The notes beneath the pieces were generated by a model. It had not been told where the DNA came from and made no database searches. It was given only the letters and a program-made list of their open reading frames with translations. Below are positions 4,311 to 46,192 of a stretch of 64,000 bases of DNA, piece by piece; positions within the stretch are counted from its first letter, which is position 1; each line of letters opens with the position of its first letter. The translations under genes and the position numbers were made by a program. The stretch lies in the sequence record LR756502.1; one strand, 5' to 3'.

Positions 4311-5060
4311 ATGAAGTATCTAAAAACTAATGAGGGTTTATTTTCAAAGGATGAAATTCCTAAGAATCTTATTGATGATATTGAAAAGGAAATTGAAAAG
4401 AACTACTCAGTGACAGTTTCTGGTATTAAAACAGCTGATATAGTACACAGTGTAACTTTTAAAACAAAGACACCTATTGGTGATGTTGATTTGGTTCTAA
4501 ATCTTGAAAAGCCATATAATAAGGGCAAACTAAGGTCCGCTATAATTGGTAATAATATAATATTTGAATTTTTTCAGGATGGTAAAAGAAGATTTGATTG
4601 GAATTACGAATTAAAACAGTTAAGAGGTGACCAGCTATCTGTTGTTTTAGTTAATATAACTAAATCTATAGATCATATTGTGAATAGAGTTACTCGGGAT
4701 AGAGATAGGAAAACAGAACATGAATCCTTCTATAATATAATAAGTGTTGATGAGATTAAGGATTTATGTGGTGATCTATATGATCTTATTGGTGAATTTA
4801 CTGTTGAGAAAGCTGGTCGGGAATATTTGGTTAAGTTTAGTAATGTTACTGGTATAGTTGCAACAACTGTAAACAATAACGCCAGAAATATCACGAGTTC
4901 AATTAGACCAAATGATAGGATGCTTAAACTTTTAATTGAATTGAACTCTCTATATAAAAGACTTCTTAATGGGTATAAACTAACCATGCTTTTTTCAATT
5001 GTACCTAATAATTTTCCAGTCTCAAAATCTTTGGTTATTACTATATCTAAAGCTAAATAA
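4311..5060 (+). CDS. N-tagged hypothetical protein
   Basis: MKYLKTNEG; AAATATATA upstream. Confidence 0.7.
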   Translation: MKYLKTNEGLFSKDEIPKNLIDDIEKEIEKNYSVTVSGIKTADIVHSVTFKTKTPIGDVDLVLNLEKPYNKGKLRSAIIGNNIIFEFFQDGKRRFDWNYELKQLRGDQLSVVLVNITKSIDHIVNRVTRDRDRKTEHESFYNIISVDEIKDLCGDLYDLIGEFTVEKAGREYLVKFSNVTGIVATTVNNNARNITSSIRPNDRMLKLLIELNSLYKRLLNGYKLTMLFSIVPNNFPVSKSLVITISKAK

Positions 5061-34695: not shown

Positions 34696-36024
34696 ATGAG
34701 AATTACCGATTTCAAAAAGTTTGAAGCAATATCACCATCTCAGTTCAGACCATACATGAATGTGTGGACTGAGGATCCATTATTGAGAGATAGGTATAAA
34801 GATATTTTCGAAACATATAAGAAAAAGTTTAGTGGTGATAAGAATGCTTATAGAATATACTTACCCTTGGTTGAGGAAATTAAAAAGTCTGAAACTGAAA
34901 TTGAAATTACTGGTTTTTTAGATAAGGCTGGTTATGATATTATTGATTATATTGCCGGTCAAGCAAAATTTAGAGGAGCTAGAAATCCTAAAAGAATAGG
35001 TCAGGTAATAACTGGTCTTGAGAGAAATGCTACACCGGAAGAGAAGTTAGCTCTTAAGGACTTGATGAAAAAGTTCATTGAGGATCCAAATAGAAAGCAA
35101 GGAGCAGCTTCAAAATACTTGGTTTGTATATCAAGACATCCTTATGATATTGCTGGTGCTGATACTAATAGAAAGTGGGAAAATTGCATGACATTGGGTA
35201 CTGAGAATGGAAATCATCACTATCTTATACATGATGTTAAAGAGGGATCATTAGTTGGATACTTAATAGAGAAGGATGATAAGAATATTAAAGACCCAAT
35301 TGCTAATTGTGCGATTAAACCATATTTAAATGTTGATGATGAGTCTGATGTTATTTTAGTAAGAGATCCAAAAACATACCCACAACCATATCCAGATTTT
35401 GAAAGAACTGTTACAAATTGGTTGGATGAGGTTAATGGTGGTAAGCAAGGTATTTATTGTTTGAATTCAAAATTATATAATGATAATAGACTTAATAATA
35501 AGATAGTTACTGTTAGGGATATGAATCCAGAAATAATAAAAAAGATTGCTAAAGTTTATGGAATTAAGCTTAGAAACTTAATAATAAATGATGATATGAG
35601 TATCGATGTAAAGGGTGATGTTGATTTATCGGATAGGGTACTGACTAAATTTCCATTGGTGTTTAATCGAGTATTTGGTAATTTTAGAGCCACTGATAAT
35701 AATTTAACAACATTGGAAGGATCTCCTTGTATTGTTGATGGTGACTTTTTGGTTTATAATAATAAGTTAGAATCTTTGAAAGGTGGTCCTACTAAGGTTG
35801 GTGGTGAGTATTCAATATCCACTAATAATTTAAAGTCTTTGGATCATTGCCCTACTGAAGTAGGTTCTCATTTTGATATGTCATTTAATAAAAATTTATC
35901 TCACATTAGAAGAGCTGATGTTACTTGTCAGATTGGTGATAAATTTGTAAACAGAGGAGCGGATGACACCGACTCATATACCTATGAAGGAATGAAATAC
36001 CTTCGTAATTTCAAAAATTTCTAG
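34696..36024 (+). CDS. N-tagged protein with C-terminal leucine-rich solenoid repeats
   Basis: Repeats NNLTTLEGSP/NKLESLKGGP/NNLKSLDHCP with ~22-aa period; ends MKYLRNFKNF. Confidence 0.75.
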   Translation: MRITDFKKFEAISPSQFRPYMNVWTEDPLLRDRYKDIFETYKKKFSGDKNAYRIYLPLVEEIKKSETEIEITGFLDKAGYDIIDYIAGQAKFRGARNPKRIGQVITGLERNATPEEKLALKDLMKKFIEDPNRKQGAASKYLVCISRHPYDIAGADTNRKWENCMTLGTENGNHHYLIHDVKEGSLVGYLIEKDDKNIKDPIANCAIKPYLNVDDESDVILVRDPKTYPQPYPDFERTVTNWLDEVNGGKQGIYCLNSKLYNDNRLNNKIVTVRDMNPEIIKKIAKVYGIKLRNLIINDDMSIDVKGDVDLSDRVLTKFPLVFNRVFGNFRATDNNLTTLEGSPCIVDGDFLVYNNKLESLKGGPTKVGGEYSISTNNLKSLDHCPTEVGSHFDMSFNKNLSHIRRADVTCQIGDKFVNRGADDTDSYTYEGMKYLRNFKNF

Positions 36025-44938: not shown

Positions 44939-45208
44939 ATGTTAAATCCTAAATATCTGATAACTATATCTTATCAACAAAGTGTTTTGAGTGGAAACCA
45001 ATTGGTTTGGATTGGTACCGCAAGTGGTTCAACACAATCAATTCCTGCATACAGCACACCTTGGTATGTGGCTTCTATGCCAGAAGTAGGAATATCAGCA
45101 ACTGGATCTACATATGTTTTAGCATTAGCGAGTTTAATGGTTATAGCAACCGCATCAACAACAATTGATAGTGGTACTCCACCATTAAATACCATAAGAA
45201 CTTGGTAA
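44939..45208 (+). CDS. small Ser/Thr/Ala-rich late protein
   Basis: Own TAATATATA at 44910; terminator after. Confidence 0.6.
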   Translation: MLNPKYLITISYQQSVLSGNQLVWIGTASGSTQSIPAYSTPWYVASMPEVGISATGSTYVLALASLMVIATASTTIDSGTPPLNTIRTW

Positions 45209-45215
45209 AACAAAT

Positions 45216-45241
45216 AAAACCCAGTCTATTGACTGGGTTTT
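45216..45241. terminator. bidirectional intrinsic terminator
   Basis: AAAACCCAGTC-TATT-GACTGGGTTTT. Confidence 0.85.
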
Positions 45242-45245
45242 ATTT

Positions 45246-45926
45246 TTAGTATAATAGTATAATTTTACCTTTTTGAATATCTCTAAATGATGCTTGTTTG
45301 CCGGTTATGTGATCAACAACAAGGTTATCTTTTACCCGATATGTTCTTCTTTTATTACCCCTACAACCAGTTCCAACTTGACCACTTCTGTTTTCATAGA
45401 CATCTTTATTGAATCTAATTTCTTCAACTGTTTTGAGTTTATCATAGAGTCTTTCCCAGGCAGCTTTTTCATTCTTAGCCTGATCTCTACTATCTTCTGA
45501 CCTAACTTGTGTACCAGTTGGTATGTGAGTTAATACACAACAGCTTGATACTTTATTAACATTCTGTCCACCTTTGCCACGACTTCTGGTAAATTGTCTA
45601 CGAACATCATTTCTGTTTAGTTTATATTCAAATACTTTAGTTGGATCTATTATAGCGACTGTTATTATAGAGGTTTGTGTTCTGTTATTCCTTTCGGTTG
45701 GTGGTATTCTAACAAAGCAGTGTGAACCACTTTCATTTTTAAAATACTTATCTATCCCAACTCCTTGTAGTCATATAGAAGCGTATCCTTCTATTATTTC
45801 TTTTACTTGGTAGTTTAGGTTATTTAATTTAGCAGACCTGATATAAATATCCATTAAGTCTTTTACTAAAAGTTTACTATCGTTGCCGCCTTCAGCAGCT
45901 CTTATTTCTATGATTATTTCTTTCAT
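45246..45926 (-). CDS. prfA: class I peptide chain release factor, RF1-type (PxT, GGQ), lacking domain 1, with in-frame TGA at codon 52 (45771-45773); readthrough gene or pseudogene
   Basis: Manual translation: MKEIIIEIRAAEGG...GYASI*LQG...ESGSHCFVRIPPTE...TQTS...RSRGKGGQNVNK...THIPTG...KRRTY...VDHITG; 226 codons in one frame. Confidence 0.9.
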
Positions 45927-45994: not shown

Positions 45995-46192
45995 TCAGAA
46001 TCCTCTGAACTTCTTTATGGTGTTGTTTGTTTTCATTGATTGTTCGGAGTCAATTAACTTCATCCACTCTTGGAACTTTTTGAATTCTTCTGGGCTTAAC
46101 TTCTCAGCAATAGCAATTGCTAACTCATTTGTGAGTCTGCAGTTTCTAGATACCGAAACCATTTGTGGTAATATTTCTCTATAATGTCCCAT
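45995..46192 (-). CDS. hypothetical protein upstream of the release factor
   Basis: TATATTTG 3 nt before ATG; ends in TGA. Confidence 0.65.
   Translation of the reverse strand: MGHYREILPQMVSVSRNCRLTNELAIAIAEKLSPEEFKKFQEWMKLIDSEQSMKTNNTIKKFRGF

Follow-up and report, generated by a model that had tools for sequence, protein, structure and literature searches.

An RF1-like release factor gene of a huge phage is interrupted by a conserved in-frame UGA that probably gates its synthesis

The DNA analysed here is a 64,000-nucleotide (nt) stretch of sequence record LR756502.1 (positions 62001-126000 of 642,428 bp, from an uncultured phage; hereafter the window), and its subject is a gene for a release factor (RF) of the RF1 type that is interrupted by an in-frame TGA. 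LR756502 presumably ranks among the largest phages described by Al-Shayeb et al. 2020, who place their genomes above 634 kb in the Mahaphage clade and predict Bacteroidetes as hosts (PMC7162821). An earlier note, made from the letters of the window alone, had described a hidden 226-codon reading frame with class I RF motifs and a single TGA at codon 52. Our translation recovered all of these: on the minus strand, which had not been stated, the frame spans 226 codons plus a TAA terminator (Table 1), and a base-by-base check found codon 52 (AUA UGA CUA) to be its sole internal stop. EIRAAEGG occupies codons 7-14 (GGND of EIRAAEGGND at 45879-45890), and the further class I RF motifs ESGSH..RIPPTE, THIPTG and RTYRVKDNLVVDH were found in the same frame. 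In established RF1 structures the tip of helix α5 reads U1 of the stop codon, and the EIRAAEGGND segment is homologous to this tip.

Each side of the stop was recognised by Pfam on its own. The 51-residue N-terminal piece matched PCRF model positions 100-142 (E 5e-7), and the 174-residue C-terminal piece matched PCRF positions 164-194 together with the RF-1 domain (E 3e-25). The absence of a Met downstream of the TGA, which had also been pointed out, can be put more strongly: the listing of open reading frames (ORFs) holds none of at least 30 codons that opens at ATG, GTG or TTG in this frame after the TGA. As there is no in-frame start 3′ of the TGA, the GGQ part cannot come from re-initiation, and the full-length factor needs decoding of the in-frame UGA.

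Table 1. Features of the RF1-like locus, in window positions
Feature	Position	Strand	Basis
Whole RF1-like gene, domain-1-less class I release factor paralog	45246..45926	-	translation, Pfam, NCBIfam, PDB sequence search
Start codon ATG	45926-45924	-	
N-terminal segment, codons 1-51, 5′ of the gate	45774..45926	-	PCRF model positions 100-142
Gate: in-frame TGA, codon 52, +4 C, family "position C"	45771..45773	-	sequence and relatives
C-terminal segment, codons 53-226: remaining decoding domain, GGQ domain, domain 4	45249..45770	-	Pfam RF-1, invariant alignment positions
PPT tripeptide (CCA CCA ACC), PxT-type "anticodon" motif	45696..45704	-	sequence; aligned to T. thermophilus RF1 P184-V-T186
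GGQ catalytic motif (GGT GGA CAG)	45564..45572	-	sequence; G67 G68 Q69 invariant in family alignment
Terminator codon TAA	45248-45246	-	
Inverted repeat AAAACCCAGTC-TATT-GACTGGGTTTT between the RF gene and a convergent 89-codon ORF (44939-45208)	45216..45241	.	sequence
65-codon ORF just 5′ of the RF gene, same strand	45995..46192	-	ORF listing; without Pfam match

Profile, sequence and fold searches all ranked RF1 first. The NCBIfam RF1 model (NF001859 / TIGR00019) gave 30.6 and 130.8 bits for the N- and C-terminal pieces against an equivalog cutoff of 400, and the C-terminal piece scored higher with RF1 (131 bits) than with RF2 (95) or PrfH (58.7; TIGR03072, cutoff 166.65). All RF model scores stay below their cutoffs because domain 1 (~100 residues) is missing: the RF1 match opens at position 104 of 347, and a full-length RF1 has ~350-360 amino acids. 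A sequence search of the PDB had T. thermophilus RF1 as its best match (90.6 bits), ahead of PrfH (63) and RF2 (58). Aligned with T. thermophilus RF1, the gene product has V at Gln181, Q at His193 and T at Thr194; in most family members the residue aligned to 181 is Q and that aligned to 193 is either Q or H. The tripeptide is PPT, not the RF2-type SPF. The ArfB model matched merely 32 residues around GGQ and, unlike in ArfB, the PCRF decoding domain is present.

A structure was predicted for L102, an intact family member (226 amino acids, ~40% identical to the pieces of our gene), from an alignment of unmodified pieces. The model had a mean predicted local distance difference test score (pLDDT) of 85.7 and a predicted template modelling score (pTM) of 0.74; residues 19-38 (the α5 region) were of low confidence, probably owing to the poor alignment of the N-terminal pieces. 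Its top 19 PDB matches were ribosome-bound bacterial RF1 or mitochondrial mtRF1/mtRF1a, and bacterial RF1 was the best fold match (TMq 0.76, 35% identity), with RF2 at 0.73 and PrfH at 0.45. The sequence, hidden Markov model (HMM) and fold rankings agree in identifying the predicted product as an RF1-type factor without domain 1, in line with the earlier note on both counts. The likeness to PrfH that the note had drawn extends to some features and stops there. PrfH (RFH, paired with RtcB2) also lacks domain 1, keeps GGQ and is of similar size (~200-230 amino acids), but its model scores far below cutoff, its fold match is much poorer than that of RF1 and no RtcB gene was found near the RF gene; in the PrfH literature examined, no recoding gate is described. 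Judged by PxT alone, the phage factor would be specific for UAA and UAG.

The interruption, here called the gate, is shared by relatives, and its recurrence in dozens of independent assemblies goes well beyond chance. Among other huge phages of the collection that holds LR756502, the homologs of LR756501 (735 kb) and LR745206 (634 kb) each have two in-frame TGAs, one of them at the homologous codon 52; that of LR756504 (636 kb) has one in-frame TGA elsewhere, and that of LR756511 has none. A TGA at the homologous codon was also found in many IMG/VR, ENA, JGI and NCBI contigs. Two scans of IMG/VR yielded ~90 further loci, giving 77 distinct sequences in all, and gates were typed by locating the N-terminal EIRAAEGGxD in three frames relative to the C-terminal match. 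The family so assembled is defined by a domain-1-less RF with an EIRAAEGGxD(A/S)KLLV N-terminus and an HRWQRVPPTE-type decoding loop, which the LR756502 gene fits. A gate lies between the N-terminal GGxD element and the PxT motif in 70 of the 77 distinct relatives, 30-47 codons past the EIR motif (about codons 35-53): 35 have in-frame stops and 35 a +1 shift, while three are uninterrupted and four were unscorable. Among those with in-frame stops, 21 have one TGA, 12 have two and two combine a TGA with a TAG. These stops sit at four nearby positions, 30 to 45 codons past the EIR motif, and position C is TGA in most of the readthrough relatives of low G+C content (GC).

At E <= 1e-20 the protein database contained 419 relatives; of 59 full-length calls, 46 have W at the position-C gate. 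Where the DNA was readable, the codon behind this W was TGA in five proteins (six contigs) whose callers had used code 4, and a genuine TGG in one close relative (L213/P0004, 73% identical), which fits Trp insertion. The comparison with related phages that the earlier note had proposed therefore returned TGA at codon 52 in most relatives and TGG in a single close one. Stopless relatives have Y/C/V, D/Q/I/K or R/Q/H/K/E/S/L/T/C at the gate positions; such varied residues indicate that the positions are permissive and that the stops are not simply inherited Trp codons. In public records, the name given to the pieces or to code-4 translations is "peptide chain release factor 1". Because callers either apply code 4 to low-GC contigs or split the gene, the gene is mis-annotated in public databases. 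Many public entries are proteins of 225-229 amino acids with W at the gate (P0003, P0008, P0009, P0015, P0067, P0076 and others), and other entries for this family are C-terminal fragments of 155-169 amino acids; the gate accounts for both kinds of annotation artefact.

Both segments of the gene appear constrained. Pairwise ratios of nonsynonymous to synonymous substitution rates (dN/dS) were 0.06-0.26 upstream and 0.07-0.20 downstream of the stop, with dS near saturation in distant pairs, and amino-acid identity of the N-terminal segment between relatives was 57-100%. These comparisons indicate purifying selection on both halves and exclude an assembly error or a pseudogene, the two outcomes that the earlier note had named as fatal to its reading.

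Three further observations concern individual gates. L077 combines an in-frame TAG at position C with a TGA at another gate position. L030 and L031, two contigs from different samples, have two in-frame TGAs and also lack a single A just ahead of the GGQ codons (GGAAGGGTGGCCAG; locus position ~3190); candidate explanations are a third recoding event, decay to a pseudogene and a homopolymer error common to both contigs. L001 and L056 encode the same protein over their first 50 codons (dS 0.07), and the remainder is 65% identical (dS 1.4), a contrast that points to recombination inside the gene near the gate.

In the 35 relatives with a shift, mainly of higher GC, the N-terminal motif lies in the -1 frame and the protein continues in +1 without further stops. 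The typical site reads CGG AGG GGT CTT TGA C, that is, a GGAGG resembling a Shine-Dalgarno (SD) sequence, 3 nt, CUU, the stop and a C. The shift codon is CTT in 34 of the 35, in most cases preceded by GGAGG at 3-nt spacing; 27 sites have TGA as the stop, six have TAG and two have TAA, and C comes next in 23. The TAG and TAA sites are scattered among TGA sites in the tree, and their genes do not differ in the PPT and Q decoding motifs. L126 is anomalous in that its +1 shift appears to take place on AAA TGA A. This arrangement is a near letter-for-letter copy of the bacterial prfB signal, and the phage genes also share with prfB the general design of a class I RF gene cut early by a stop, its output tied to termination efficiency. 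They differ in that the LR756502 gene continues in frame without CUU or SD and has RF1-like PPT instead of SPF, in that the gate lies in domain 2 of a domain-1-less protein (the prfB site is at about codon 26, in domain 1), and in that relatives also use TAG and TAA. Among 8,164 prfB motifs there is no TAG, and no programmed frameshift is known in prfA (Prince et al. 2025, PMC12421855).

A maximum-likelihood analysis placed the frameshift type at the base of the tree, as a paraphyletic assemblage (GC mostly 0.40-0.65), and the readthrough types in a derived group (support 92/63; GC mostly 0.24-0.45), with the LR756502 gene inside an 11-member, all-readthrough clade (support 98/98). At position C, two low-GC members carry a CTT TAG C shift site. 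That the gate has persisted while over one substitution per site accumulated, and while its mechanism changed, points to selection acting on the gate as such. Together, the tree and alignments indicate that the gate is ancestral and selected in this phage RF1-like family, and that the low-GC lineage swapped the frameshift for one or two in-frame UGAs. Bacteroidia ribosomes disregard the SD, and F. johnsoniae shifts frame at prfB with an efficiency of only ~7% (PMC10798248). A switch from frameshifting to readthrough in the low-GC lineage fits the predicted Bacteroidota hosts, as their ribosomes do without SD pairing.

The nucleotides that follow the in-frame stops carry signs of leakiness. The +4 base of 49 gate stops is A in 27, C in 18, G in four and T in none; after 121 genuine TGA stops of LR756502 it is A in 59, T in 38, G in 19 and C in five. 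The gates are thus depleted in T (0/49 vs 38/121, p=4e-7) and enriched in C (18/49 vs 5/121, p=1.5e-7), figures that overstate independence because the gate sequences are related. UGA-C is the weakest bacterial termination context, and readthrough gates are biased to leaky contexts. Leu directly behind the position-C gate is always written CTN (16 of 16), nine times as CTG; among all Leu codons of LR756502, 51% are TTR and ~2% CTG. No downstream hairpin was found at the LR756502 gate, and the 121 nt around it fold with a z-score of only -1.7.

We examined the genetic code of the whole LR756502 record in 13 pieces (L006-L018). Coding density under code 11 was 87-95% in all of them, and no region gained coverage when TGA or TAG was taken as sense. 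The 934 genes end in TAA (615), TAG (167) or TGA (152). A screen for mid-gene TGAs that demanded at least 35 codons on each side left the RF gene as the only convincing case among 30 frames; the other candidates looked like frames that are antisense or of low complexity, or that extend a gene upstream across intergenic DNA. In agreement, the flanks of 35 readthrough-type loci are not recoded: their coverage gains nothing when TGA is taken as sense (0.82 vs 0.83). TGA is an ordinary stop in LR756502 and the RF gene is the exception, as the earlier note had supposed of the genome. A second in-frame stop within three codons follows 48% of TGA stops vs 31% of TAA/TAG stops (p=4e-4, LR756502). Such tandem stops may be expected if UGA is leaky during infection, and overlapping ATGA junctions may contribute to them. 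TGA stops are also spread unevenly along the genome: L006, L013 and the 42-kb L018 have 20-32 each, and the other 50-kb pieces 3-14.

We then searched for tRNAs that might read the UGA. LR756502 has ~50 tRNA genes in three arrays, and no tRNA with a UCA anticodon was found across the 642 kb (ARAGORN at default and relaxed thresholds, Rfam). ARAGORN run with introns and ps85 gave hundreds of spurious calls, which were disregarded outside the tRNA arrays. Two Rfam tRNA-Sec matches in L013 were Ser tRNAs (anticodons GCU and UGA), not suppressors, and Glu-like tRNAs with the 8-nt loop CUUUUCAG were rejected as UGA readers: the loop contains UCA, but its 2+4+2 layout fits a quadruplet UUUC. The remaining candidate is a tRNA-Trp(CCA) within an array (L013:23501-23572, LR756502 373501-373572), with perfect acceptor and T stems, a CUCCAAA loop and a central part 88% identical to annotated phage tRNA-Trp genes. 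Its anticodon stem, CAGGU/ACCUC, leaves C27·C43 unpaired. In the homologous arrays of two other Mahaphages, LR745206 has two tRNA-Trp(CCA) genes (L129:4297-4369 and 4448-4519), one with A27·C43 and the other with C27·C43 plus a second mismatch, and LR756501 has one with A27·C43 (L210:1505-1576). Across these three Mahaphages, position 27:43 is unpaired in all four Trp genes vs three of 60 other tRNAs of the same arrays (hypergeometric ~5e-5). The same feature, a CCA anticodon with an unpaired 27:43, characterises the tRNA-Trp with a 4-bp anticodon stem of Blastocrithidia, Condylostoma and some bacteria; in a 2026 study it is reported to underlie the reading of UGA as Trp in several eukaryotes and some bacteria, and in E. 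coli the loss of this pair increased readthrough of UGA ~2.5-fold (PMC13092985).

Taken together, these results favour, with a probability of about two in three, a functional domain-1-less RF1-like factor whose synthesis is gated by a UGA that is read through as Trp with the aid of a phage tRNA. The ribosome would reach the UGA at codon 52 in its weak UGA-C context. If host RF2 wins there, a 51-residue fragment without PxT and GGQ would be released; if a tRNA wins, a residue, most likely Trp, would be inserted and the full 226-residue factor made. Under such competition between RF2 and tRNA at the UGA, output would follow the balance of RF2 activity and UGA-reading tRNA, and the phage would probably tip this balance through its own tRNA-Trp(CCA) with unpaired 27:43. 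We infer the readthrough, the Trp insertion, the drive by the phage tRNA, a sensor or timer role and the stop specificity from comparisons of this kind.

Several points weigh against this proposal, besides the relatedness of the gates compared above. A single UGA with ordinary near-cognate reading could yield less than 1%, which may be too little for a stoichiometric translation factor, and it is hard to see what homeostasis would be served by placing an RF1-type factor behind an RF2-specific codon. Relatives with identical decoding motifs gate with UAG or UAA, so that cross-sensing of RF2 is not the sole possible logic. Three members of the low-GC clade (P0033, P0052 and P0080) have sense codons at all gate positions, which makes the gate dispensable, and two others (L076 and L079) need readthrough of both a UGA and a UAG, the TAG being at position C; a Trp tRNA is an unlikely reader of that UAG. 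As to the tRNA-Trp of LR756502, it is seen only under the ARAGORN default threshold and scores 31 bits on Rfam tRNA-Sec (gathering score 47), and the C·C variant of 27:43 is rare and unstable in simulation (PMC13092985).

Other explanations account for parts of these data. An assembly or sequencing error or a recent pseudogene would produce a single internal stop and a broken standard gene call, both of which are seen here. We give it next to no credence, since the same TGA at the same codon recurs in independent assemblies from many samples, two or three further conserved positions carry TGAs in relatives, dN/dS stays clearly under 1 on both sides of the stop and homologous frameshift gates exist in relatives. 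The phage might instead use code 4 (TGA = Trp), or switch to it late, with the RF1 gene merely one recoded gene among others. TGA-recoded phages are known to encode RF1 (10.1101/2021.08.26.457843; PMC10746230), the phage tRNA-Trp is unusual, and public callers gave many relatives a code-4 translation with W at the gate. Nevertheless, we regard a code switch as very improbable: no block of the 642 kb has better coding density with TGA as sense, 152 genes end in TGA and no other mid-gene TGA is convincing, a UCA-anticodon tRNA was not found, the flanks of the 35 readthrough-type loci are not recoded and, in Jade phages, the RF1 gene itself is in the standard code (Borges preprint).

The interchange of stops in the gate bears on two further explanations. 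UGA, UAG and UAA replace one another in otherwise identical shift sites of genes with the same PPT and Q, which is simplest if the factor reads all three; a factor of broad or omnipotent specificity would then read its own gate codon and limit its own activity by negative feedback, as in prfB. Four relatives (L084, L096, L103 and L126) have SPT for PPT, and V at RF1 Gln181 with Q at His193 is not a textbook RF1 decoder. In the tripeptide swaps attributed to Ito et al. in 2000, S at the first position reportedly relaxes second-base reading. The logic of prfB provides a precedent (PMC12421855). Against such autoregulation, a Pro-first PxT is the RF1 signature and HMM, sequence and fold all place RF1 above RF2, and we judge it unlikely. 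Alternatively, the gate might sense nothing and merely keep a potentially toxic RF very low. RF2 over-expression is toxic in B. subtilis and that of RF1 mildly so (PMC12421855), any of the three stops is tolerated in the gate and some relatives are gateless. However, a weak promoter or start site would be simpler for low expression, and attenuation has no need of the efficiency-enhancing prfB-type signal (SD-like element, 3-nt spacing, CUU, +4 C) that frameshift relatives retain; nor does it sit well with the bias of readthrough gates to the leakiest contexts or with the retention of a gate over more than one substitution per site and a mechanism change. Plain attenuation is, in our view, quite improbable. 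For the cross-sensor of RF2 proposed in the earlier note, this means that the need to decode the UGA stands, and that the UAG and UAA gates of relatives leave autoregulation and attenuation as other uses of the gate.

Control of an RF gene by in-frame UGA readthrough was anticipated for RF2 genes before prfB was sequenced and was never found, and a UAG/RF1-gene counterpart is likewise unknown (Atkins et al. 2016, PMC5009743). The LR756502 gene has the same early in-frame UGA design, here in a phage RF1-like gene with UGA, the codon of RF2. In the passage of that review citing its ref. 349, an RF gene of a giant amoeba virus is said to require readthrough plus frameshifting (PMC5009743). As that passage presents it, this too is a viral RF needing stop readthrough and, separately, frameshifting, but it belongs to a eukaryotic virus, whereas the phages split the two mechanisms between members of one bacterial-type family. 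We take the amoeba-virus factor to be of eukaryotic/archaeal type and non-homologous to the phage factor. Jade phages, which are TGA-recoded, encode RF1, a suppressor tRNA-UCA and TrpRS, with RF1 in the standard code (Borges et al., 10.1101/2021.08.26.457843). Their module resembles ours in joining a phage RF1-type factor with a phage tRNA able to read UGA as Trp; it serves many recoded late genes, whereas LR756502 has TGA in the RF gene alone, keeps the CCA anticodon and stops at TGA. RF1 and RF2 are listed among huge-phage genes without mention of an interruption (Al-Shayeb et al., PMC7162821). Nothing further on recoding of phage RF genes was found in the literature searched, within which the RF1-like family and its gates appear undescribed.

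In the sources consulted, such control was documented earlier just for the bacterial RF2 gene and one giant-virus gene. Textbook RF autoregulation by recoding rests on prfB alone; a 2025 survey of >12,000 genomes saw neither a programmed frameshift in prfA nor a UAG in the prfB motifs (PMC12421855). The phage family would provide both missing cases. Its members, which differ naturally in the stop (UGA, UAG or UAA), in the mechanism (frameshift or readthrough) and in the number of gates (one or two), amount to dozens of variants that make it testable what a stop-gated termination factor senses, how the signal is designed in SD-ignoring hosts and how phages control termination. Together with the 4-bp-stem tRNA-Trp, the gene may show an early step of stop reassignment in a standard-code genome. 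More tentatively, and with the odds somewhat against it, one can picture an undescribed huge-phage RF1-type family universally wired to stop decoding. No natural in-frame UGA readthrough gate would have been known before in a bacterial-type RF gene, nor any prfB-style +1 frameshift site in one of RF1 type, some of these sites being on the RF1-specific UAG. In this picture, the Mahaphage tRNA-Trp would open the gate, the cell would become UGA-leaky as a step toward TGA = Trp, and the factor would take over UAA and UAG, including the back-up stops after UGA-ended genes.

The surroundings of the gene are varied. Its neighbours in LR756502 are a baseplate spike protein, a DEAD/ResIII helicase and ORFs without a family, and no partner gene conserved across the 77 family loci was found. 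The 65-codon ORF may be co-transcribed with the RF gene, and it is not kept beside the RF gene in relatives. The inverted repeat is flanked by T/A runs on both strands and is likely a bidirectional terminator, absent from the list of a consensus terminator scan. By eye, an RNA-ligase-like (KxDG) or phosphatase-like (HCxAGxxR) ORF stands beside the RF gene at ~5 loci each, of the frameshift as well as the readthrough type (loci with such neighbours: L109, L074, L081, L088, L093; L068, L090, L106, L108, L117; L099, L101, L114, L120, L125), a hint of an RNA-repair context in part of the family.

A scan of genome contigs listed mostly canonical RF1/RF2. Among the matches listed, the Patescibacteria metagenome-assembled genomes L137, L140, L151, L152, L157, L165 and L173 have an RF1 apparently without domain 1; these genes have 51-76 open codons 5′ of the match, canonical GTGGDEA and HRVQR, and no internal stop. 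Elsewhere in LR756502 lies a full-length GOLLD RNA (RF02032, 275 bits; L014:34685-35091, LR756502 434685-435091). It is flanked by Glu-like tRNA genes with the loop CUUUUCAG (L014:34082-34155 and 35101-35174), which could be quadruplet (GAAA) decoders or non-decoding tRNA-like elements.

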